The notes beneath the pieces are model-generated. The model was not told the DNA's origin and ran no database searches. It was given only the letters and a program-made list of their open reading frames with translations. From positions 124,377-188,376 of the forward strand of contig DF237069.1 of NCBI GenBank assembly GCA_000708835.1: DNA of 64,000 bases, read 5' to 3'. The translations under genes were made by a program, and so were the position numbers. Positions within the stretch are counted from its first letter, which is position 1, and the number at the start of each line of letters is the position of its first letter. This document shows, one piece after another, positions 3,783-35,946 of this stretch. This DNA is from Klebsormidium nitens (taxonomy: Eukaryota; Plantae; Klebsormidiophyceae).

Positions 3783-6383
3783 ATGGAGGAAGGTGCCAGT
3801 TTTATCCTCAGGTTACCAAGCGAGGTGCAATTGAAGATCCTTGACATGGCTGAAGATTCTGAGGCCAACAGACGATGTTACGAATTGTTTCCACTCGGTC
3901 CTATTTGGGCCAGGTGCAGGTGGGCCAAGCTCGCTGTTGTTAGCCGATTGTCACCAGCGCCTATAAGTCCTTTTATCAGCTAGGAAGTTTATGTGATCAA
4001 GGCAGATGATTTTATCGTTGATCCTGTATGTAGGTGCTTGTAATTGTCCGTTGACTTGGACCTTGACGAATGTTAGCACAACCTGGCTGTTTGGTTGTTC
4101 ATGCAATGACGTTGGTCTACCAATCTTGAAAATAGTATTTGGGGGCTGAGCGTAACAACCATGACCAATGCCTTCAAGACAAAGTTGTAGATGTTGATCA
4201 TCCTACTAAGCGGATGCCCTTCAACCCTGATATCTAACCATGCTTCCCTTGCAGCTTGGTTTGCAAACAGTGGCGTGACTTGTTTGAGAGTCGCCATCCT
4301 TGGCCTCATTTGACCCTCCGGATCACAAACCGAGCTGCATTCAGGTCTGATGGAGAGAAGCAGAGCAGATTGATAGAATGCATGCTGCGGTTCCTTCCAA
4401 TATGCATCAACAAGATTGAAAGTTTGAAGTTCGGCTGCGACGAACTGGACGAGAGCAAAATGGTGGAAATCATGCATCAGGCTGGACCGGTCTTGAAGAA
4501 AGTCGATTTTAGCTCCCCGGTAAGTTTGCCGTGTATATTCTCAGGTTCCAACATCCTTCGCACATTCATAACCTGGGTTTCAGGGCTTGTAGCATTCGAT
4601 GGTCGTTCTCTCCTGATGATCAGAAACCACTATCTCCTTCCGAATAACCGGGCCTATTGCACTTTTATTCCTTTTGAATAAACACAGCAGTTGCATGCTC
4701 GCAGACTATTTGGTTACTGAACACTTGGAAAGGTCTCGTCAAGTAGATACGAATCCAGTGATTATGAGTGTCTTACAGGGCCGCCAATTCGGACCTGGTA
4801 TGGTCGATTGGTTCCGAAACTCTCCCCACATCAGAGAAGTGCACACAGCGTACAGCAAGCCGCGCTTGGAGCATATGCCGCCCTACCTGGAGGTCGCGAA
4901 CTTCTCGAGTGCCACTCACATTACACCAGAGGGTTTGGAACGGCTTGCTGCCATCAGAAACTTGAAGTTAAGCTCCTGCTCCAGGGCCGCAAACGGTGCA
5001 AGTTTTGGGGTGACGCTGAAGCTCGAAAAAGCCAACGCATGGCATTGATGCAACAACCACCAGCTCTGATCAGGTTTTGCCGTCAAGCGCGCAAGCCATA
5101 GCCTCCCTCTCTCTGCTTCTCGAGTGCTCAGACTGCTCTACTTGCGTGTTCCAGAGTAATTTAACATGGTGCACTAAAGCACGTCTCCTTCCATAATGAA
5201 ACGTCACGAGATTACCGTTGCTGACCGTTCATTACGACCAGGTACTCAAACTGCAACCATATGTGACCGGTTCGGAATACCCTGAGGTCCTTGACTGCCA
5301 CGCGCACATCGACGACCTTGCCGTGCTTTCTCAATTGGTCAACTTGGAGGAGCTCGAGATCATACGCGTAGTCATCTACTCTGTTCCCGACTGGCTTGGA
5401 AATTTGTCGCGCCTGAAAGTGAGTGTCAAAACAATCTAGTCTTGGAAATGCTGTTCGGTTACATACGAAGATGTTGATTGTCGAACAAGTTCAGATTTGA
5501 TTGTTCACAAGTCCCAAGCTTTGAATCTAGTGGCCTATTTAGTGGATCCCTTGTGAGAATTCGGCTTGTGTTCGTGAGGTATGATGATGCTCATTTGGAG
5601 CAGATTGCGTGGATCAGGGCACGTCTGTTTCGAAGCTTGCAGGCGCTTTTACCAGATTTTGAGGATCTAAGTTTCTCACATTGGTCGATCGAATCAGCTA
5701 GGAAAGACTCGTCAAATCAAGTTCATAAAAGTCCCACCCATTCGCTGTCGTAGGGCCCCGACACCCACTCATCGTTCAAGAGATGATATCAAATAACGAA
5801 GCTGCGGTCATAAAATCCTCGTGTGCTTTGTCTTTTCCATCAGGCAGTGTACCTGAGCAAGTTCGTGCCACATCACGCCCATCCTTACTTCAACCTGCAC
5901 CGTCTGGCCCACATCCAGCAGCTCAAGCTTCGTTTCGTGAACGAGATTCCCACCGAACTCGCTGCCCTTTCCAATCTCGAACTCCTCATGATGGACGCCT
6001 GGCGCTCCGAGCTGGACTTTGGCTCCCTGAGCACGTGCCCGAAGCTTAAGGTCATCACGATCGACAGCAGTAGGAACCTGCAGAGCGGCTACATGACAAT
6101 CAAGGGTTTGGAGAAGGTTCCGAATCTGGAGGCATTCCAGTATTTGCCAGAGCATTTGAACGGAGACATCGTGCTGGGAGAGGGCGGCCTGATCAACTTG
6201 AAGAATTTTGTTGCCACCGCGGGAGCAGGGCGTTTGCTGCTTGAGGGATCCCCCCAGGCTTTTGAAAGATTGTGCCACGGGGCAAAGAAGATCGTAATCA
6301 GCATGCATGACAAGAGTGCGACCGATGAGAAAATCAAGGTGGGGATTCAGGGCATACTCCGAGCGGCGCGAGCCTCGGTGTGA
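3783..6383 (+). CDS. F-box / leucine-rich-repeat protein
   Basis: Exons 3783-3919, 4255-4519, 4779-(4967 or 5009), 5242-5418 and 5844-6383. The F-box is split across exons 1-2 (ILRLPSEVQLKIL...ARCSLVCKQWRDLF). LRR-like repeats follow (LAVLSQLVNLEELEI, SVPDWLGNLSRLK, EIPTELAALSNLELL, LSTCPKLKVITI). The exon 3 donor is ambiguous. Confidence 0.8.
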
Positions 6384-15952: not shown

Positions 15953-17371
15953 GGGAAGGATGAATGTCCCACTTTTGGACGGTTTCGACACAATGCAGAC
16001 ACCATGCGCGCAGATGCGAATACGAGATGCGATTCTCACGTATACATATGACTTCCGACCTTGCTGTCTGCACACTGACCATTCCTTTGTGACCACTGTT
16101 GACCATTTCCTTTGTGACCACTGTTGCCCAATGCCCCTTTCAACGTGAGTCGTTGCAATATCGCAACATTCTGCCTGACGGTCAACTTCTGAAGATATAT
16201 GCTTTCTTCCTGATATGGCGTAGACTACCTGAGACCGCCATGGACAGCATGGCGTACATGGACAATAGGTTCGCAAATTTGGTCTTTCCAAGTGTACCAA
16301 CTTATGGCCAGAAGTCGTCTACCTTCAATTGAACTACAAACCCAAAGATGAACGTCCAGATTCTTATGTTTCTATTAGCAGCATCTATGCGGGTTGTACG
16401 TGCTACGGTGTTCATTGATTTATTATTTTACCGTAATAGTGCAGCCGGGTTACAATAACTCAGCATAATCTGCTTATGTCAAGTAAGCCAATGCTATACG
16501 CCTGCTGCGGTGTTTGTTGGCTTTGCCACCAATGGAAGGAGGTCACTAGTTCTGTGCCTATATGAGCCATCGCCAACGCGTCGGCCCCGCGGCTTCCACA
16601 TGCTAAATGAAGAATCTAAGCTGTACGTGGCGATTGAAGGCGATCATTCTTACAAGACCAGCTTACGCATCTTGCAAGTTTCTGGTTTTTAAACTCTCGA
16701 ATGATTTTGCTTGTCAAGCTGGCTAATTGAGCTTTGCACTATACCGTAGTACGATGGGGCATGATGCAACAATCACAACAACAGAACAAGCAGAACATTC
16801 TCTGGACGAGGCGGCATCCAGACTCCAGCAAACAAGTTACAACGCCATAGGTATGATGATTGACGGATGACTCCTTCCTTACCCAACTTCGATACAGTTG
16901 TCGCGAATAGCAGCCGTCAGATGAGTCACATGCCTGCTTTTATGTACCCGCCGTGGCTGTCACACCGTCCATTTTCTACCCTCCGGATGTCATCATCATG
17001 CATCATGCCAACCTGCATAGGTGTACAGCTGTACCGGCCAACCGGCACATGCATCATTCATCGTGCTGCAGGCTGCAAAGCCTGTAATGTGCAGCAGAGC
17101 TGGGGCGCATGAGCCTGCCATGGAGGCCAAGGCGATATGATTCTCGTGTGCTGGGCAATGAAGGAAAGATCGCTTGCAACAGGCACGGCATTGCTGATAT
17201 TTTCTGTAGATGAACGTGTTTCGACCATCCCTGTCACTTCCATGGAAGACCGACAATAATGGCGGCAACAGCATTGCCAATGTAATGCAGGTTGTTTGGG
17301 TGTTTGATGTGAACACAGTGCAACCAGCTCAGGAAGGAGCGTTCAGCGCGTCGAAGGCATAAGCATCCAAA

Positions 17372-20300
17372 ATGGCACCAGCACCGCGGGATGAGAGGCT
17401 GATCAGGGCGCTTCAAGCCCGGGCGGCCTTGGCATCTGCACAGAATAATATTCGGAAGAGTGCGAGCTATCAGAAAGCGGTTGAGAAACTGACTGCCCAC
17501 AGGCGGCCAATAACTAGTGCGATGGAGATTGGCATGGTGAAAGGGATTGGAGTCCAGATTAAGAAGCTACTTGAGAAGGTTTACAATGGGGATGTGGAAG
17601 AAATACCCCCAGAAGCTGAAGAGGCAATGGAATACGGAGACTTGCCCATTCCCCAGGTAAGAAAATGGAGGACTTGGGCAAGAAGGAGCAGAGGGCAATT
17701 CCACTTACATGAGGTGAAACTGTAAAGAAACTGGAGGCACCTGCTGTTCAGTAGATGTAACATCCATGTAGCAAGCATGAAAGAGGGTCCCAATTGTCTC
17801 GTTGTCTGGTTGTCTGCTCATCTCGTTGTTGTGAGCCTTGAGGCTAACTTTTTGCTGCTGCCCAGTTGCCCCGTACATTCAAATCAGGAGCCTCTACATC
17901 GCCCTCTGTTTTGAAGCAGGAGCCCTCTCCTGCATCCTTCCGTCGCCTTGTGCTGGGGCAATCTGAAGGGCCTTTTGAATGCAGCAAAGTCAAATAGCCC
18001 TGGGCGTTCCTTTGCTTGCCATGTGCCTCCTGTCTCTTGGTATGTGCATCCTATCAACAGTTTTCTACGTTCGATCTCTCTTGACCTCTTTCGTCAAAGG
18101 GTGGAGCATTGACCCATAAAAGCTGCGTACCGCCCACAGGGTTTCGCCTACATTCCTGGCCCCAACACTGGCGCCCGTGCCATTCTCATTGCCATGTTTG
18201 GTGAAACAAAGAGACCCGGATATCCAGGCTTCCTGATGAAAGATCAAATCCAGGCGGCAGCTACAGCAACAGGTGACTTTGACCATCCTTTAAGCTGTAC
18301 AAGATGAAGGAATACGTCTCGGGTGTTTGTCAGTGCTTTCTCTGTTGAAAAGGTGCTGTTGTGTTTTCTTGTGCGCTTCTATCATCATATCCAAAGAAAC
18401 TATCAAAGTAGATATCTGACCCCGTGTACGTTTCTGCAGGAATCAGCAACACCTCAATGTATCCGCAGCCCAATGTGGGCCGCTTCTACAGTGGTTGGGA
18501 CGGGATCAGAACGCTGGAAGAGAACGGCCTGGTTCTCAGAACCAAACATGGTAAAAAGGTCTCCTTCACTTTTGATTCTTGGATATAGCTGGACGTATGC
18601 GTATTCTGCAGACCACTCTCAACCACAAATAGCTGCTTAAAGAACATCTCATCACATTTGCGTGTCTGATTAATATGAGGCATTACTTTTCAACAACGAA
18701 GGGGCACTCCAACTGAGCTGTGATCGCAGAGATACAAGAGAGCATCTGGTTGAAGTAAGAGGTCTGATATGAAACAGCTGATTGCTGCAGGGGTTTGAAT
18801 GACGACAATGAAATCACTGTTTTGTGCTTTCTATGAATGCGGACCTCTTGGTTGCATTGATGCTCGAATCAGTGTCTATTCCTGGACACTGTACTGAGAA
18901 GTCACCAGTACAGAGTCCCTAATGAACGCTTATGGAATCAGCTGCTTACACAGGTACAGATGACTAGAAAGTGTCTTCCCACAACGTTGCCCGTCACATC
19001 CAACATATAAAAGGTGACCCCCCCCCAAAAATGGAGGAAAAAGAAGAAATCGCAATATGCTGTTGCTTTGCAGGTATGGGGGTTAAGGAGCAGTTCCGCC
19101 TGACAGACCAGGGCCGGCAGCTTGCATACTTCCTGGAGGGAGAGCTGGGCCTACAACAAGGGGGCCGACAAGATGGCGGGGTCGCACTCCCCCAAGACTT
19201 CTCTCCCGCGCACCGCCGTCTCTCAGGTCACTGTCAGGGGCGCCAGGCGGGGGAAGGCGGCTTTCCAGAGGTCATGATCGGCCGGGGTCGAGAAATTGAG
19301 ATGGGCAGCAACTTGCAACAAGTGGAAGAGGTTGAAGCGGCCACCGGAGAGGGCTTCCGCCTGTACAAGGCGGTGTGCAAGAGCAGCAGTGCGGTGAGGA
19401 AAAAGTACGCAGTGCAACTTCATGTCAGGGTGACACTTGCTCGAGACGCGGAGGTGGAGCAGGCAGAGGCCCTGGGGCGAGTTTTCGCGGGCAGGAGGCC
19501 GGAGCTGGTGGCACGGCTCAAAGAGATGGGCTTCAGCGAGGATCGGGTGTTGGCGGCTCTGGCGGCCACCGGAGCTGATGAGGCAGCCGCTGTGCAGATG
19601 CTAGTGGATGGGGCAAGCATGCAACGTGACGAAAGTGGGACAGCAGCGCCAGGTGGCGTCACCCAGATGGTGGTAGTCAGGAGCGAGTGCGCTTGCCCCG
19701 AGGGGCGGTCGTCTCACGGCAAGTGCAAGCATGCGGCCGCCCTGTTTTTGAGAGTGGACGCCCACCTGCGGAGCGGGGCGGAGCTGGATCGGCCGGAGCC
19801 CGGTAAGAAGAAGACGCCCAGGAAGAAGCGAGAAAACGGGGATGGTGGGTTGCAAGCGAAAACCGCGCCCAAGAGGCGAAAAAGCGGAGGAGGGGCGGAG
19901 GCGCCTCTGCCTAGGGAAGAGGATCGCAGCCTGGGTGCAATTGCTGCACAGCTGGCGAAGTCGGTGGGCTCACCAATAACGCCTCCAAAGCACAAGGACG
20001 TGGCGCGCACGCCTGTCGGGGCCAGCCCGCGGGAGATGGCGGCCCAGGCGGCCTTTGAACGGGCAGCCATGCAGGCGTCCCTCCGGAAAGACTCCCCGAC
20101 GAGAGCGCCGCCGGTGGAGAAGGGGACGGGGCAACGGAATGTGGACTTTGTCGATCTTGAGGGAGGGCTGGGCCGCGCTCACGAGCGGCACGAGAGCGAT
20201 CAGGGGGTTAGACGGGCGGTCTCTGCCAACAAAGAGTCGCGCTCAGAGACTTGGAAAGGGAAGGAAGCAGCCCGAGATGCGTTGCATGGTAGTATGCTTA

Positions 20301-23300
20301 ACTTGGGCCGAGCGACCCCCGGAAAAGGCAAGGCGGTGGCCTTTGTCGACTTGGACAGCGATTGTGACGACCCGCCGGGGCAGCGGGATGCTGACTCCGA
20401 GGAGGACGCCGCTCTCCTCTCAGTGGACTGGAAGAGCCCCAGAGCCAGCTGGGGTAGCGGGTGGAGCAGCGCCGCTACTCCCGCATCAGATCACCGAGAG
20501 AAGAGCGGAGGGCGGCGTGGCGAGGAGGCTGGGCGGGGCCGATCGCTTGATCTGGACTGGCTGACAGGCGACAACGCGCCAGATCCTGCCGAGCTTGACA
20601 GGCTCGTGGATACGGTGACTGCCACAGCGGAGCCCGGGAGTGCGCCCTCGGCGAGTGGTAGGAAGCAAGGTGGCGAAGTGGGCGGCGTGCGTCGCGTGAC
20701 GGTCGTAGTTGATGAGACGGAGCGGCAGACCAACAGCAACCCGAACTCGGTGTACCTGGAGCTGCATCGCCAGCACGAAGCGCTGCATGCGGTGGCCGGC
20801 GTGGCGCTGGCGGCGGAGAAGCACAAGCTGGAGACGGGGGACTACCTTTGGCTGGCAGAGACGGACGAAGGCAGGTGAGGACTCGATGCTTGCATCAAGC
20901 AGGGTTTGGACACAAGCTTCCGAATCCATGGGTTGTTACAAGTCATGTGAAAGTTAATTTGTACTCTTGTTCGATGAAGGCATCATTCCATGAATACCTG
21001 TCGGCTGCCCGTCCAAAGTGCATGGGTGGGATTATTCGACTCAAGGGCAAAGAGTTTTGGCGGAATTACCATTATCTCGCGGCTTCGAAGGCTTTCGTTC
21101 GAGATTCTGGTTGGACGAGTGTGGGTCTTGACGGAAGCATGCAACTGTTAATCAAGGTTACTCGCGTCCCGTGTGACTCGTTTAGCTTCTGCTATATGTG
21201 CTAGCGTGCAAACAGTCTGACAGGTCTGAGTCTCCCCCTCCTTCGATACTGACGTTCAACCACCGTGGCTTCATTCGATAAGATGCTTTGTTGCAAAAAT
21301 CCACGACTCGCTGACACTTCTCGGCTCAAGGAAGCCCAGCTCGGCTGCAGACTTCTCCTGAATGACCAACCACTCGTTGCACGAACTCCGAAGGAAACAC
21401 GAACATAGGATGGCAACAACTGGCCCTCGACTGACAAATTGATCCTCTATTATGCACGGTCCGTTTGCAGTCGGTCCTAGAGCCGAATGAACACCCGTTT
21501 GAGTCTAGCCCAACTGACAGTCCGACTCAATCGAACGAGTACACTTGTAACGAGGAGACTTTGGTTGGACCGGCAAATCTGTTTGTGATGAGAAGTGACG
21601 ACTCTGCTTCATGTGCAGTTTCGTTCTCGACACGGTCATCGAGCGCAAGACGATGTCCGACTTGGTCACCCGGTCGGTCACGAACGCCCACCTGAAGCAG
21701 ATCCAAAAGATGCGCGCCAGCGGACTGCCGCACGTGTGCCTCTTACTCGAAGGAGAGTTTCGGTGAGCGCCTGCCTGCAGTCCCTCGGGTCTGTCGCCTG
21801 GTTTCCGCACAAGGGTTTGTTTGAATCTTGCTGCGAGTTGCCTTCTAGAGCAGATGCAAAGGTCGAGCTTCTTTCCAACACCTGGAAACTCAAGATGGTC
21901 AGGTGCTGGAGTGAAGGACGTGCTGATCCCCCGGTCCTGTAAGCTGTCGGGCCCGAGCACAACCCTCGACGACCTCGGTCAACGTGGAGGTTCAAGACTT
22001 CGATACGTTATCCTCTGACAGTACTCTCGAAAAAAGCTTCCTTCCGACGAGGATTGCAGTTTGCCTTCATAGTGGCCTTATACTCGCTTGCAGGACCGCA
22101 CGCAAGTTCGTGGCAGTGGCGGGGCAAGACTGCCGCGGAGACGTGGACAGCGCGGAGGCGGTGTGGCAGCTGATGGCGGAGCTCCTGATCGGCACCGCAA
22201 AGGGGATGGACGTGCCGCAGGGGGTGCCTATTGGCAGCGGGTATGGCCCCCCGCCGCCAGTGAGGGTGCTCCAAACGAAGGACGTCAAGGGGACTTGCAA
22301 GCTGCTGACTCACATCTCCGCCGCTCTGGCCGCCAGGGTTGGAGGCGGGCTAGAAGGTGGGGAAGCTGCGAGCGCGGCAGCTTCGCGTCAGATCTCTCTT
22401 GAGGATTTCAACAAGGAGGCGCGGCAAAGGAGAACCAAGATGAACAAGCTGCTCAAGGAGGCGGAGGGGCGGGCAATTGAGAGTCGAGTAGGGGACGACG
22501 GGTTGGAGGATCCGGGCGAAAGACGTGGGTTTGCGGACGAGGTTCAAAGACTGTCCGCAGATCCGGACGCTGGTGTCGGTCCCAGCGCAGCGCAGGCAAG
22601 GAGCGGGGTTGCTGACGCAAGCGCGCAAGGGGGCCAGCCCTGCGACGAGTGCGAGGCGCAGCGGGCAGCGCTCGAGTGCGCAGAATGCGAGCAAGCGCTG
22701 TGCTCCGACTGCTGCGCCAGCCTCCACTCCGGGGGGGCCCGGAGGGCTCACCGGCTGACGTCACTGCCCCCTCCGTGGCAGTGCGAGGAGTGCGAGGGGG
22801 CATCGGCGGCCGTCTCGTGCGGGGAGTGCGAGCAGGCCCTCTGCGCGAGCTGCTCCGCCAAGATTCACTCTAAGGGGGCCAGGGCACGGCATGCGGTGGC
22901 GCCACTGAGCCTCGCACCCATGCAACCCACCTCACGAGTTTCGACGCCGCCCGACACTCACGATAGCGTAGAGAGGTCAGGGCGTGCGCTGATGGTGGCC
23001 AGTAGCAGTGTGTACGCGAGCCTGCGCACCGTGGATCTCGGGCCGAGAGTGGCTCTGGAGCAGACACGTGGCGAGCGGGACAGAGGCCCCGTGGAGGAGA
23101 GCCTGTACCTGGGCCTGGCGGACCCGGGTGGGGCAGCGGGGCGGGCAGGAGAACGCGAGGCCTTTTGGGTGGTCCTGGTCAAAGGGGACGCCTTCCTGCG
23201 GGGCATGATCCAATCGCAGGTAAGCTTGGTTGCAAGTGCCGCAGGCGAAACGGGTCACTGACTGAGTGCTCCCTCTGTCATTCGCGAGTTGGGGAATCTC

Positions 23301-24082
23301 CTCTTTACTCGATGTTGAGGGCGCACGGGGGCACGATAATGAGGCAGGTCAGGACGAAAAGGCTACTTTGGCTATGCGAAGGATGCATTTGCAGGTAGCT
23401 GAAGCATCACGCATCTTGTTTTGACAATGCTTTCACATTCATGTTGAGGACAGCGTGATGCTTTCATCAGCGACATCCAGCAGCGGATATGGAAAGCCTA
23501 TGGATCCACCCAGGAGTCAAAAATTTATGCAGCAATGGATACTTGCCCCTCTTAGCTGAGCGTTTGGTCTCAAACGAGGGGTCTCGCTGCTTACCACGAT
23601 TTCGGTCGTACTCCAGTAAAGTCCAAGACAAACCTGCAAAAGTAGCTGCCACCTCGGCGCTTCTGCGCATCAACACCCGCTGCTTGTGCTAACCGCAGGT
23701 GGCAGTCAGCGGCGCATCCTCTGCCACCTGTCCGGAGCCCGACCTGCAGGCAGCGGCGGTGCTCTTCCTGACCTCCCTCCCAGACCCGCCCTGCCCCTCC
23801 GCCCACTCCCCAGGCAAAATCCTGATACTCGAAAACGTGTTGCATCACTGCCGCGCGATGGCTGCGGCGGCAGAGCGAGCGCGGCTGAATGGGGCGGCAG
23901 GCCCTGGCGAGGACGGGGACCAGGAGCTGCGCGCGTTCTTGGGTTGCCACGATTTGAATGAAGAGATGATTCGGTGGATAGTCAGGATCATGTTCTCACG
24001 AGGTTGGAACGTGCAATTTACAGGTAATCAGCTCGAGAGCTCTCTGCTTTTCAGGCACTTGGCAAAGGCATATGTAAAGTAG
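17372..24082 (+). CDS. MUS81-like structure-specific endonuclease with extra SWIM, UBA, 2x B-box and a second degenerate ERCC4 domain (about 1,300 aa)
   Basis: Exons 17372-17656, 18140-18272, 18440-18550, 19074-20874, 21619-21761, probable 21944-21989, 22094-23219 and 23699-24082, with compatible phases. N-terminal HhH (MVKGIGVQIKKLLE). MUS81 winged helix (YIPGPNTGARAILIAM...FYSGWDGIRTLEENGLV...FRLTDQGRQLA). ERCC4 core VVVDETE...GDYLW...FVLDTVIERKTMSD...KQIQKMRASGLPHVCLLLEG, which fits GDXnERKX3D. Confidence 0.85.
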
Positions 24083-25295
24083 TCTTAACGCTTACTCAGC
24101 TCAGTGTCAAAGCAACTTGTACACTAGAAACTCGCTCAGGAGCAGTTTGCTCTTGGATGTGTATAAATGTAAACAGTGTTTGGTTTGGCAGTGTGCATCT
24201 AGGCAGGTTGACTGTGTTTGTGTTTGAAGGCTGACAAAGGTTTGCCTAATTTCGTGTCATATCTGGCGCCTCACTCAACTTTGCGCTCAACAATCACCGT
24301 TTTGGTTATTGCGGCCGCAGGACCGCAGCTGAAGTCAATAGGGGTTCGATGGTCTCTTTTCACAGTGACGCCGTAGCCAGTGCGCGGCCATATAGGCTTC
24401 TCATGGCATACAATGTGTATGATTGTTCTGTTGCCGATGCTTAGCTACCTAGAATGATCCTTCTCGATTGGACGAAGTGGAAGTATAGAGTCTACTTCTT
24501 CAGCACACGTATACAAAAATGGTTGCTTCAACGAAGTATACGGCGGGGTCTTGCGCGACTGCAGATCAACCATTTCATGAGTTCTTCCCTAACCGTCCAT
24601 TTGATTGACGCACATGTGGTGCTTGCAAATCTGGTGCTTGGCCCGACGGTTCATGAAATCGAAGTGACAACTACCTGTGGATTTCCTAGATCATTCTTAT
24701 ACTAAGATGGACGAACCAGTGTATGTGGCCGTGGCTATAGGTATCTTCAAAGGTACATAGCACGTACGCTTGTGGACGATCTGAACCGTCCTGACTCATG
24801 GGCTACCCGGATATGAGGGCGGACCTGTCTAGTGCAATTCCGTCCCAGTCCAAGCTGTCGGATCATTGTAAGTTGGGGACAGAGACGTACGATGTCGGAC
24901 GTCCGGATCAATCAAGGGCCCCATCTGCACCGCGTGTACTAAGACCCGTACATGGATGTAATACTAAGCGGCCGTCGGATGCCAGCTATGCCAACTTCAT
25001 TCCATATCACAGGCCACGACAGAGGGCTAATTGCAGTCTCCTATGATTACCGTTGAGTATATTCGACAGCCTTGCTTGCCTGTCCGAATGCAAGATTGGA
25101 CCCTCGGCCAAAAATCTTCTCAGTACTCGGCCTGCAAAGCATTGCAGTGGCCCCCAAACCCACATGTTGCGCGTCCGGGTCCCTCAGCAAAGATTCACAT
25201 CATCCGTCCCTTACTTTGGCAAATGGGTGAAAGCCGCCTGAAATTCGAACTCCTGAGCAATTATTGTCGAGAGCCGGATCGCTTTATTGAGCAGC

Positions 25296-28223: not shown

Positions 28224-28646
28224 TAATAGATAGGTGGCGTTTGCATCAAAAATTGTCTCAATTATTGTGCAAGGCCTCTGCCCAACACAGAATCCGATCC
28301 GAGGTGGCTGGTGCTATGGTTGGCCGACCGGGCCGCGTTTCAATAAACCTCCTATCGAAATGGGTTAAGGAGCGCAAACCCAGTCCGATCCTGCCGGTGG
28401 GTTCGACGCAAGCCGGTCACCTGCCGAAACCTTCTACGAAGACTCTCGAACCAAGTGCCGTTTTCTGAAATGGACTCTGTCAACTTCCTGGAACCTCCGA
28501 GTCCAGGGAATTTGCAGCGGCAGGCCGCTCAGCTACTACTAGCTGCATGTTCTGATATTTATGTGAAAGTCCAACTTGGACACACCAGTAGTGCATTTAT
28601 GGGTCCTGGGTGGCTGCAAAGACTGAAGAGCTGGCGGGCACTCAAC

Positions 28647-29657
28647 ATGGCGGGTGTTAACAACGGTGTGCCTGCTGGAGAACAAGGTCTGCCAGGGCAA
28701 GCAGCGGTACCCAGCGAGGCCGGTCCAGAAAGGGCACAGGCAGGTGGCGGCGCCACTGGAGGGGAAAGCAACATAGTGTTCAAAAAGAAGGCACCCAGCA
28801 AAAACGTGAGGAGGAGAGCTCGCGATGATGGTGACGATGATGATGCAGCTGGGGGAGCGTCGGCGGTAGTAAAGAAAAGCAGCAAGCAGCCACGTTGGGA
28901 GAAGGACGCTGGGACTCCCGATGAAGCTGGCGCGCAGAAGAAGGCCGGGTTTGTGTTTGATTCGAGCCGGCAGGTCCAAGTGGTAGGGGATGCAGGGGCC
29001 ACGAGGACCAACGAAATGGAGACGGAGTTTGATAAGGATGGGCGGGCGCTGAGAGAGCAGCAGCTGAAGAAAGCAGGGCAAGGGAAAGAGGTCGATGATA
29101 AGGTGTACAGGGGTATGAATGCCTACACAGATCATCGAGCAGGGTTCCGGAGGGAGCATACGATAGCGGGTGAGAAAGGTGGAGGGGCGCATGGGCCATT
29201 GCGGGCGTCTGCGCATCTTCGGGCGTCGGTCAGGTTTGACTACCAGCCTGACCTGTGTAAGGACTACAAGGAGACAGGATACTGCGGATTCGGGGACGCG
29301 TGCAAGTTCATGCACGATAGAGGGGATTACAAGTCGGGGTGGCAAATGGAAAAAGAGTGGGATGAGAAGGAGAAGTTGAGAAAGGCGAGGTTGGCACAAG
29401 GAGTTGAGGAGGAACAAGAGGACGACGACGAGGATAGTGATGAGGATGCCTTGCCATTTGCTTGCTTTATCTGCCGGCAGCCTTTCAAGGATCCTGTGGT
29501 AACTAAGTGCGGGCACTATTTCTGTGAACATTGCGCTTTAAAGCATAATTCGAAAACAAAGAACTGCTATGTTTGCGAAAAGCCGACGGGGGGAGTGTTT
29601 AACACCGCACATGAGATCATTAAAAAGATGAAAGAAGAAAAGACTAAAGTAGGATAG
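28647..29657 (+). CDS. CWC24: RNF113A/CWC24 spliceosomal CCCH zinc finger + RING protein
   Basis: Single-exon ORF (open from 28455; likely ATG 28647). [51 protein letters not shown] (CCCH) and [30 protein letters not shown]...CYVC (RING). Confidence 0.96.

Positions 29658-30614: not shown

Positions 30615-35946
<5,332 letters not shown>

Follow-up and report, generated by a model that had tools for sequence, protein, structure and literature searches.

To our knowledge, every eukaryotic nuclease of the XPF/MUS81 family that has been studied pairs its ERCC4 domain with a second ERCC4-like subunit, and does so via (HhH)2. Archaeal XPF and Hef are ERCC4 nucleases that act as homodimers without a distinct inactive partner and that have kept the (HhH)2. 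In animals, fungi and plants, MUS81 has a length of about 550-660 residues. For the catalytic subunit of MUS81-EME1/MMS4, a structure is listed under Chang et al. 2008 (reference 28 of PMC3424549). Inactive ERCC4 partners that act in trans have been described as EME1/EME2, ERCC1 and FAAP24 (PMC3763369, PMC3711432), and a further group is formed by the SHOC1-type ERCC4-(HhH)2-like proteins (PMC5962103); all of these are separate polypeptides that end in (HhH)2. A literature search yielded no paper on two ERCC4 domains within one chain.

In a window of 64,000 nucleotides of Klebsormidium nitens DNA (the whole stretch that was analysed, from contig DF237069.1), we observed what is, judged from its sequence, very probably one expressed gene for a divergent structure-specific endonuclease of the MUS81 family that a few related green algae have in common. 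With canonical MUS81 the encoded protein shares, in identical order, an N-terminal Pol-beta-like HhH, a probable MUS81-type winged helix and an ERCC4 domain with the GD...ERK...D motif; however, canonical MUS81 ends in a C-terminal (HhH)2, which the K. nitens protein does not have. At 1327 residues, compared with about 550-660 in MUS81, it contains three conserved additions: a UBA beside a SWIM zinc finger, which lie with a poorly conserved linker of about 300 residues between winged helix and nuclease, and, after the nuclease, two CONSTANS-like B-boxes and a C-terminal domain of ~210 residues without detectable relatives. The gene may be a paralogue that exists alongside canonical MUS81 and EME1.

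The gene spans positions 17372-24082 on the + strand as seven exons with GT-AG introns and an open frame of 1327 residues, and an in-frame TAA lies four codons upstream of the ATG. Its features are as follows.

17372-17656, + strand: exon 1, with the start codon and the N-terminal HhH, which as in MUS81 is of the Pol beta/lambda 8-kDa type (Pfam HHH_8)
18140-18272, + strand: exon 2, first part of the probable MUS81-type winged helix
18440-18550, + strand: exon 3, remainder of the probable winged helix
19074-20874, + strand: exon 4, with a linker, UBA and SWIM, then a second linker, long and poorly conserved, and the first half of ERCC4
about 19499-19603, + strand: UBA, in exon 4 (Pfam, 34 bits)
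about 19673-19756, + strand: SWIM zinc finger CxC..CxH, in exon 4 (Pfam, 21.3 bits)
from about 20690, + strand: first half of ERCC4, in exon 4, with the VDETE and GDYLW motifs (in the spliced model)
21619-21762, + strand: exon 5, ERCC4 core, with VIERKTMSDL (ERK..D) and the LLLEG strand (Pfam ERCC4)
22094-23219, + strand: exon 6, with the second half of ERCC4, a linker, the B-boxes and the start of the tail
22094-22334, + strand: second half of ERCC4, in exon 6, ending in VRVLQTKDVKGTCKLLTHISAAL (contiguous with exon 5 in spliced contigs)
22335-22640, + strand: post-nuclease linker, in exon 6, at the usual position of the MUS81 (HhH)2, of which the starting SLEDFNKEAR alone is retained
about 22641-22757 and 22782-22898, + strand: two tandem B-box zinc fingers, in exon 6 (Pfam zf-B_box)
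22980-23219, + strand: first part of the tail, model residues 1121-1200, at the end of exon 6, conserved in four species
23699-24082, + strand: exon 7, second part of the tail and stop codon, spliced onto exon 6 in the contigs from all four runs
24083-24241, + strand: 3' untranslated region, to the limit of the RNA contigs

Support for this model at the RNA level comes from contigs of four public runs from four studies. Exons 3-7 are present on single contigs (X3 record 5, 4444 nt; X6 record 8), 3' ends fall at 24216-24241, and the introns removed in the spliced contigs are 18551-19073, 20875-21618, 21763-22093 and 23220-23698, each bounded by GT..AG. At the exon 2/3 junction, the loose 5' ends of four contigs match the last bases of exon 2 (18240-18269). 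The RNA contigs start within exon 2, and the exon 1/2 junction rests on splice sites and a frame that are conserved in two orthologues. All domains are found on one mRNA, exon 1 being joined by splice sites and frame and the remainder by RNA contigs. An earlier, sequence-only reading of this DNA had assigned the nuclease and the C-terminal exon to one gene, and the contigs from four studies that join exons 6 and 7 confirm this; the coordinates and peptides that it quoted are all found in the window. Of the junctions that it listed, 23219/23699 is seen in RNA, while a boundary at 21944 is unused and has no exon nearby. Any model whose exons are read from raw sequence might fuse two genes, or include a C-terminal exon that lies outside the MUS81 transcript. 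Here this is exceedingly unlikely: single contigs from the four studies carry exons 3-7, with exons 6 and 7 joined at a GT..AG intron, and exon order, phases and open frame are the same in the orthologous loci L001 and L002. Because the C-terminal exon is in the same mRNA as the nuclease, neither separate genes nor an early-ending transcript can account for the locus.

Three related algae retain the gene wholly or in part. L001 (78% amino acid identity) and L002 (about 54%) have the same seven exons and an open frame, and a fourth relative (L003-L006) has part of the gene; outside the gene, L002 shows no collinearity with the window in its flanks. In the comparison of the window with L001, dN/dS is 0.125 for the nuclease, 0.126 for the B-boxes, 0.217 for the tail and 0.54-0.58 for the linkers.

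The MUS81-type HhH, the probable winged helix and the ERCC4 catalytic motifs have all stayed intact and are the most strongly constrained parts of the protein. The N-terminal HhH is recognised by Pfam HHH_8 (E 5.7e-08), the best PDB match of exon 1 is the Pol lambda 8-kDa domain, although a weak one, and this HhH is kept in L001 and L002. MUS81-like_WH scores 20.3 bits (E 7.5e-04) on the exon 2 piece scanned alone, below the Pfam cut-off of 27 because two introns split the domain; exon 3 is 68% identical to that of L002. Exon 5 alone matches Pfam ERCC4 with E 1.7e-05, both of its junctions are seen in four runs, and it is 84-98% identical to its counterparts in the relatives. The GDXn-ERKX3D signature is present, and VDETE, GDYLW and ERKTMSDL are invariant across three species save for one S/A change in ERKTMSDL. 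The ERCC4 and SWIM matches are marginal, just over their Pfam cut-offs, because introns split the domains and the pieces were scanned apart. As a family member, the enzyme would cut branched DNA (flaps, forks and nicked junctions) via its ERCC4 site, as other MUS81 enzymes do.

The MUS81-type HhH, the intact ERCC4 active site and the lack of a recognisable (HhH)2 following the nuclease had all been noticed from the letters of the sequence, and Pfam agrees on each: HHH_8 reaches 33.5 bits, above its cut-off of 30; ERCC4, whose VDETE, GDYLW and ERKTMSDL motifs are in the spliced model, reaches 25.2 bits (cut-off 24); and downstream of the nuclease no HhH family is found in exon 6 or 7 at E <= 1, nor in the tail pieces at E <= 10. 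The post-nuclease linker is 58% identical to that of L001, with a dN/dS of 0.58, and the protein ends three residues past its last predicted helix. If the tail were a badly diverged (HhH)2, the protein would be an ordinary MUS81 with insertions. The tail does sit at the C-terminus, the usual position of the MUS81 (HhH)2, and AF2 models exon 7 with five helices, which is the count in (HhH)2; however, that model has a pLDDT of 41, the Pfam HhH families remain negative at E <= 10, GhG hairpin motifs are absent from the sequence, and the conserved region, with ~210 residues and a strand-like start in exon 6, is far above the 60-80 residues of (HhH)2. We therefore regard a diverged (HhH)2 as highly improbable. 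An intact, expressed and selected MUS81 without (HhH)2 means that the rule of pairing through (HhH)2 can be broken, and K. nitens MUS81 offers a natural test of the (HhH)2 requirement. The reach of this is modest for now, because the finding is limited to a handful of close relatives and its basis is sequence only. The orphan tail would take the place of (HhH)2 in pairing or in contacting a partner. By analogy with archaeal XPF and Hef, a partner-free homodimer mode could apply to the K. nitens enzyme too, although the archaeal proteins keep the (HhH)2 and have no UBA, SWIM or B-box modules.

The tail comprises ~210 residues (about model residues 1118-1327) and is interrupted by intron 6. Its dN/dS between the window and L001 is 0.217 overall, 0.26 for the exon 6 part and 0.19 for exon 7, and between L002 and L005 it is 0.167; values of 0.17-0.22 in two independent pairs therefore identify it as a real, constrained domain. 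No Pfam family matches either half in any orthologue at E <= 10, and neither phmmer nor profile searches of the PDB returned a relevant match to it. When exon 7 was compared with 1.84 billion representative sequences, the sole match was the same exon of a relative (P0001); word-index searches with exons 4, 6 and 7 returned exon-sized open reading frames of relatives only, an exact search of JGI metagenomes across the exon 6/7 junction gave no match, and a search for related loci with the exon 7 alignment found none. Tail-like sequence thus appears to be restricted to close algal relatives. A search for protein-language-model look-alikes of exon 7 brought up a FIRRM fragment cluster (0.89) and HEAT-type clusters, a lead that we rejected; the same search gave no usable match for exon 7 of L002 and 0.82 at best for the exon 6 tail.

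Two readings of the tail have to be weighed. In the first, the tail is a second, catalytically dead EME1-like ERCC4 fold that packs in cis, so that the protein would be a single-chain MUS81-EME1. By eye, the order of hydrophobic strands and amphipathic helices in the tail can be mapped one to one onto the gene's own nuclease domain, with the tail end WNVQFTGNQLESSLLFRHLAKAY opposite the nuclease end VRVLQTKDVKGTCKLLTHISAAL. Folded separately by AF2, the tail halves have a pLDDT of 38 (exon 6 part) and 41 (exon 7); for the first half, the model, which is of low confidence, shows strands at SLYL and FWVV and a helix at GDAFLRGMIQ, and these two strands and the helix after them lie where the GD and ERK strands would be expected. 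This model fits the proposed strand/helix order without discriminating between folds, and the exon 7 model alone, at its pLDDT of 41, consists of helices only, which argues against an ERCC4 fold. The normal dimerisation module, (HhH)2, has been lost, so that a substitute would be needed, and the 215-residue linker is sufficient for the tail to fold back. However, no ERCC4 or other match is found in Pfam at E <= 10 or by PDB sequence or profile searches, so that sequence similarity of the tail to ERCC4, unlike that of the inactive partners, is undetectable. An hhalign comparison of the tail with the gene's own nuclease domain gave P = 0.45; pairwise alignment of the two against shuffles gave z of 0 to 1.5, and cheap-gap profile alignment against shuffles gave z of 0.6 to 2.3, with the best path outside the proposed register. 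An internal duplication of ERCC4 was rejected, as the hhalign, pairwise and profile alignments were all non-significant. In addition, the known pseudo-partners EME1, ERCC1 and FAAP24 finish in (HhH)2, which the tail lacks, and they act as separate polypeptides whereas the tail is in-chain.

On this evidence a dead ERCC4 fold in the tail is possible but doubtful. Were it true, the tail would share the role of those partners, a catalytically empty ERCC4 fold paired with another ERCC4, be it active or inactive. We hold it unlikely, if conceivable, that the whole arrangement applies, in which the dead domain pairs with the active one in-chain, both (HhH)2 are dispensable and UBA, SWIM and B-boxes provide targeting instead. 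With a tail that is an in-chain pseudo-partner, the protein would be the first MUS81-EME1-like nuclease to be self-contained, and structural and biochemical studies would have a single-chain enzyme ready to use.

The second reading, to which we give an even chance, takes the tail for a new domain, specific to the lineage and not related to ERCC4, with a possible role in homodimerisation, partner binding or regulation; the enzyme would then still need a separate partner or pair with itself. The failure of the Pfam, PDB and representative-sequence searches to detect similarity to any family is consistent with this, as are the negative hhalign and shuffle comparisons with the gene's own nuclease. 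Furthermore, exon 7 contains five Cys/His residues that do not vary across three species and that may make up a metal site, a feature absent from ERCC4 folds. Nevertheless, a fold may be shared despite missing sequence similarity, the strand/helix order is equally compatible with ERCC4, and positive evidence for another fold is absent. Should the tail not be a pseudo-partner, it would represent a new module for dimerisation or for contact with a partner.

The additional modules are more readily assigned. The UBA scores 34 bits against a Pfam cut-off of 22.4 and is annotated in the L001 orthologue too. The adjacent SWIM passes marginally (21.3 bits against 19.6), and its C-x-C...C-x-H residues are invariant across three species. 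Between the window and L001, dN/dS is 0.26 for UBA and SWIM together and 0.27 for the exon 4 linker. We propose that UBA, SWIM and B-boxes would recruit or regulate the enzyme, via ubiquitin and via protein or DNA contacts, and these additions suggest that in these algae the cutting of junctions may be under ubiquitin-linked control. Pfam zf-B_box matches two stretches (E 9.5e-13, 48.5 bits, cut-off 24.1), the B-box Cys/His residues are invariant across three species, and dN/dS between the window and L001 is as low as 0.126. In the PDB, the B-boxes are best matched by 7wsj, the CONSTANS tandem B-box (E 8.8e-07). Plant CONSTANS likewise has two adjacent B-boxes, with identical Cys/His spacing; there, however, they belong to a transcription regulator that also carries a CCT domain, whereas the B-boxes of K. 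nitens sit inside a nuclease.

Canonical GT-AG sites join seven exons on the plus strand of the window into a 1327-codon open frame followed by a stop, with an in-frame TAA four codons 5′ of the ATG. Since introns split the protein, Pfam was run exon by exon.

Exons of the nuclease gene (GT-AG model) and the Pfam families matched in each
17372-17656 (+), exon 1: HHH_8, 33.5 bits
18140-18272 (+), exon 2: MUS81-like winged helix, 20.3 bits (below cut-off; partial domain)
18440-18550 (+), exon 3
19074-20874 (+), exon 4: UBA, 34 bits; SWIM, 21.3 bits
21619-21762 (+), exon 5: ERCC4, 25.2 bits
22094-23219 (+), exon 6: B-box, twice, 48.5 bits
23699-24082 (+), exon 7: zero families matched

Between 0.66 and 0.79 of the sampled words of 19074-24082 are present in each of 18 public runs from 6 studies; exons account for 0.69 of this stretch. 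We aligned contigs from four runs, each from a different study, to 18350-24300, and observed that in all four one contig skips introns 3, 4, 5 and 6 exactly, each GT..AG. Exons 3-7 lie on single contigs in transcript sets X3 (record 5, 4444 nt, ending at 24241) and X6 (record 8, 3862 nt, ending at 24216). Because single contigs splice these exons together, the nuclease and the C-terminal exon sit on one mRNA; the gene is not split, and its contigs, ending at 24216-24241, extend past exon 7. Of the junctions queried by the sequence-only reading, 23219/23699 is thereby confirmed, while at 21761/21944/22094 exon 5 is spliced directly to 22094, with no exon in the vicinity of 21944. At their loose 5′ ends all four contigs run into the final bases of exon 2 (18240-18269), so the exon 2/3 junction is also seen; the exon 1/2 junction is predicted, from conservation only. 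Partial retention of introns 5 and 6 occurs in low-depth contigs of all four runs (21783-22099 and 23192-23723), at depth 2.6-6.5 versus 31-87 for the spliced form, and could reflect unspliced precursor or DNA carry-over.

The spliced model keeps the catalytic motifs VDETE, GDYLW and ERKTMSDL, the intact active site claimed earlier. The MUS81-type HhH proposed with it is recovered as HHH_8, and the winged helix reaches a sub-threshold match over the partial domain scanned. In the PDB, exon 1 matches the Pol lambda 8-kDa domain best, and the B-boxes match the tandem B-box of CONSTANS best. In exon 4 the UBA (about 19499-19603) is flanked on one side by a conserved segment of strand-like character, FRLYKAVCKSS...KKYAVQLHV, and on the other by a SWIM CxC..CxH finger at about 19673-19756 (all within 19262-19760); the Pfam SWIM model spans the zinc-binding end only. 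After the nuclease, the usual C-terminal region is reduced to a short SLEDFNKEAR start and Pfam gives no HhH family at E <= 1, in agreement with the reported lack of a recognisable (HhH)2, whereas in canonical MUS81 a C-terminal (HhH)2 is a defining feature. The sequence-only observation is borne out in full as regards its peptides (found in 17000-24600 by sequence reading and ORF listing), one-mRNA gene and nuclease motifs. We conclude that this is a real, expressed and selected MUS81-family gene of unusual architecture, with a predicted nuclease function. Full-text literature searches turned up no algal MUS81 described as carrying UBA, SWIM or B-box modules.

Searched against 1.84 billion representatives, exon 7 has a single match, its counterpart in a relative represented by an 8.5-kb Logan contig (L001); exon 4 matches both L001 and a contig from a JGI metagenome (L002). 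A fourth relative, closely related to L002, was recovered in pieces L003-L006 with alignments of exons 6 and 7. Rebuilt, the L001 and L002 orthologues each have seven exons with intron phases as in the window, frames that stay open for 1332 and 1391 aa, and identities to the window protein of 78% and about 54%; both keep every domain as well as the catalytic motifs and tail. Because automatic gene calling on the L001 and L002 contigs made each exon its own ORF, the databases contain only pieces of the protein; no spliced copy of the tail domain was found in those searched. Intron 6 measures 405 nt in L001 (6671-7075), 417 nt in L002 (13920-14336) and 479 nt in the window; in both relatives it is a multiple of three, yet with in-frame stops.

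Between the window and L001 (dS about 0.55), dN/dS is 0.125 for the nuclease, 0.126 for the B-boxes, 0.15 for the winged helix, 0.217 for the tail (aa 1121-1327) and 0.54-0.58 for the two linkers adjoining the B-boxes. Because the tail gives 0.217 here and 0.167 in an independent pair (L002 versus L005), its sequence marks it as a constrained domain rather than a drifting extension.

The tail had been proposed to be a second, dead ERCC4 pairing in cis with the active one. Its strand/helix order can be matched to the ERCC4 domain one element at a time, and its last strand-helix pair looks like that of ERCC4; these likenesses, seen by eye, are the same type of reading as the original proposal and carry no statistical weight. 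Sequence tests of the proposal were all negative: neither tail half of any orthologue matched Pfam at E <= 10, and phmmer or profile searches of the PDB returned nothing relevant; hhalign between tail and nuclease, each as an alignment of three species, gave P 0.45, and zero aligned residues in global mode; BLOSUM62 alignment with 500 shuffles gave z = 0 (local), 0.9 (semi-global) and 1.5 (second halves only). Cheap-gap profile alignment at three gap settings gave z = 1.1, 0.6 and 2.3, its top path pairing elements outside the proposed register. The known inactive partners, EME1/2, ERCC1, FAAP24 and the SHOC1 type, are polypeptides of their own with (HhH)2 at the C-terminus (PMC3763369, PMC3711432, PMC5962103, PMC3973302), and full-text searches turned up no single chain that carries two ERCC4 domains. 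We regard an in-cis pseudo-nuclease as rather unlikely, and give an even chance to the tail being a new domain unrelated to ERCC4.

With intron 6 splitting the whole domain, the tail halves were folded separately. Together with one orthologue, exon 7 reached pLDDT 41 and was modelled as helices throughout; the exon 6 part with three orthologues reached pLDDT 38, SLYL and FWVV being modelled as strands and GDAFLRGMIQ as a helix. Both models are too poor for a fold search. Language-model look-alikes of the tail yielded no lead that reproduced. Three Cys and two His of exon 7 (residues 11, 51, 83, 84 and 120; window 23699-24079) are invariant in the three aligned species and could form a metal site, though among such close relatives invariance may mean little.

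In L002 the gene is preceded by ORFs for a NAF-domain kinase (CIPK type) and an EF-hand protein (1-1313 and 4133-4339), neighbours that the window gene was not found to have. An ORF at 28455-29657 (+), downstream of the nuclease gene in the window, encodes a CCCH zinc finger and then a RING finger, in makorin-like order. Two minus-strand ORFs (30615-31855) match the protein arginine methyltransferase oligomerisation subdomain and probably belong, as exons, to a single PRMT gene.
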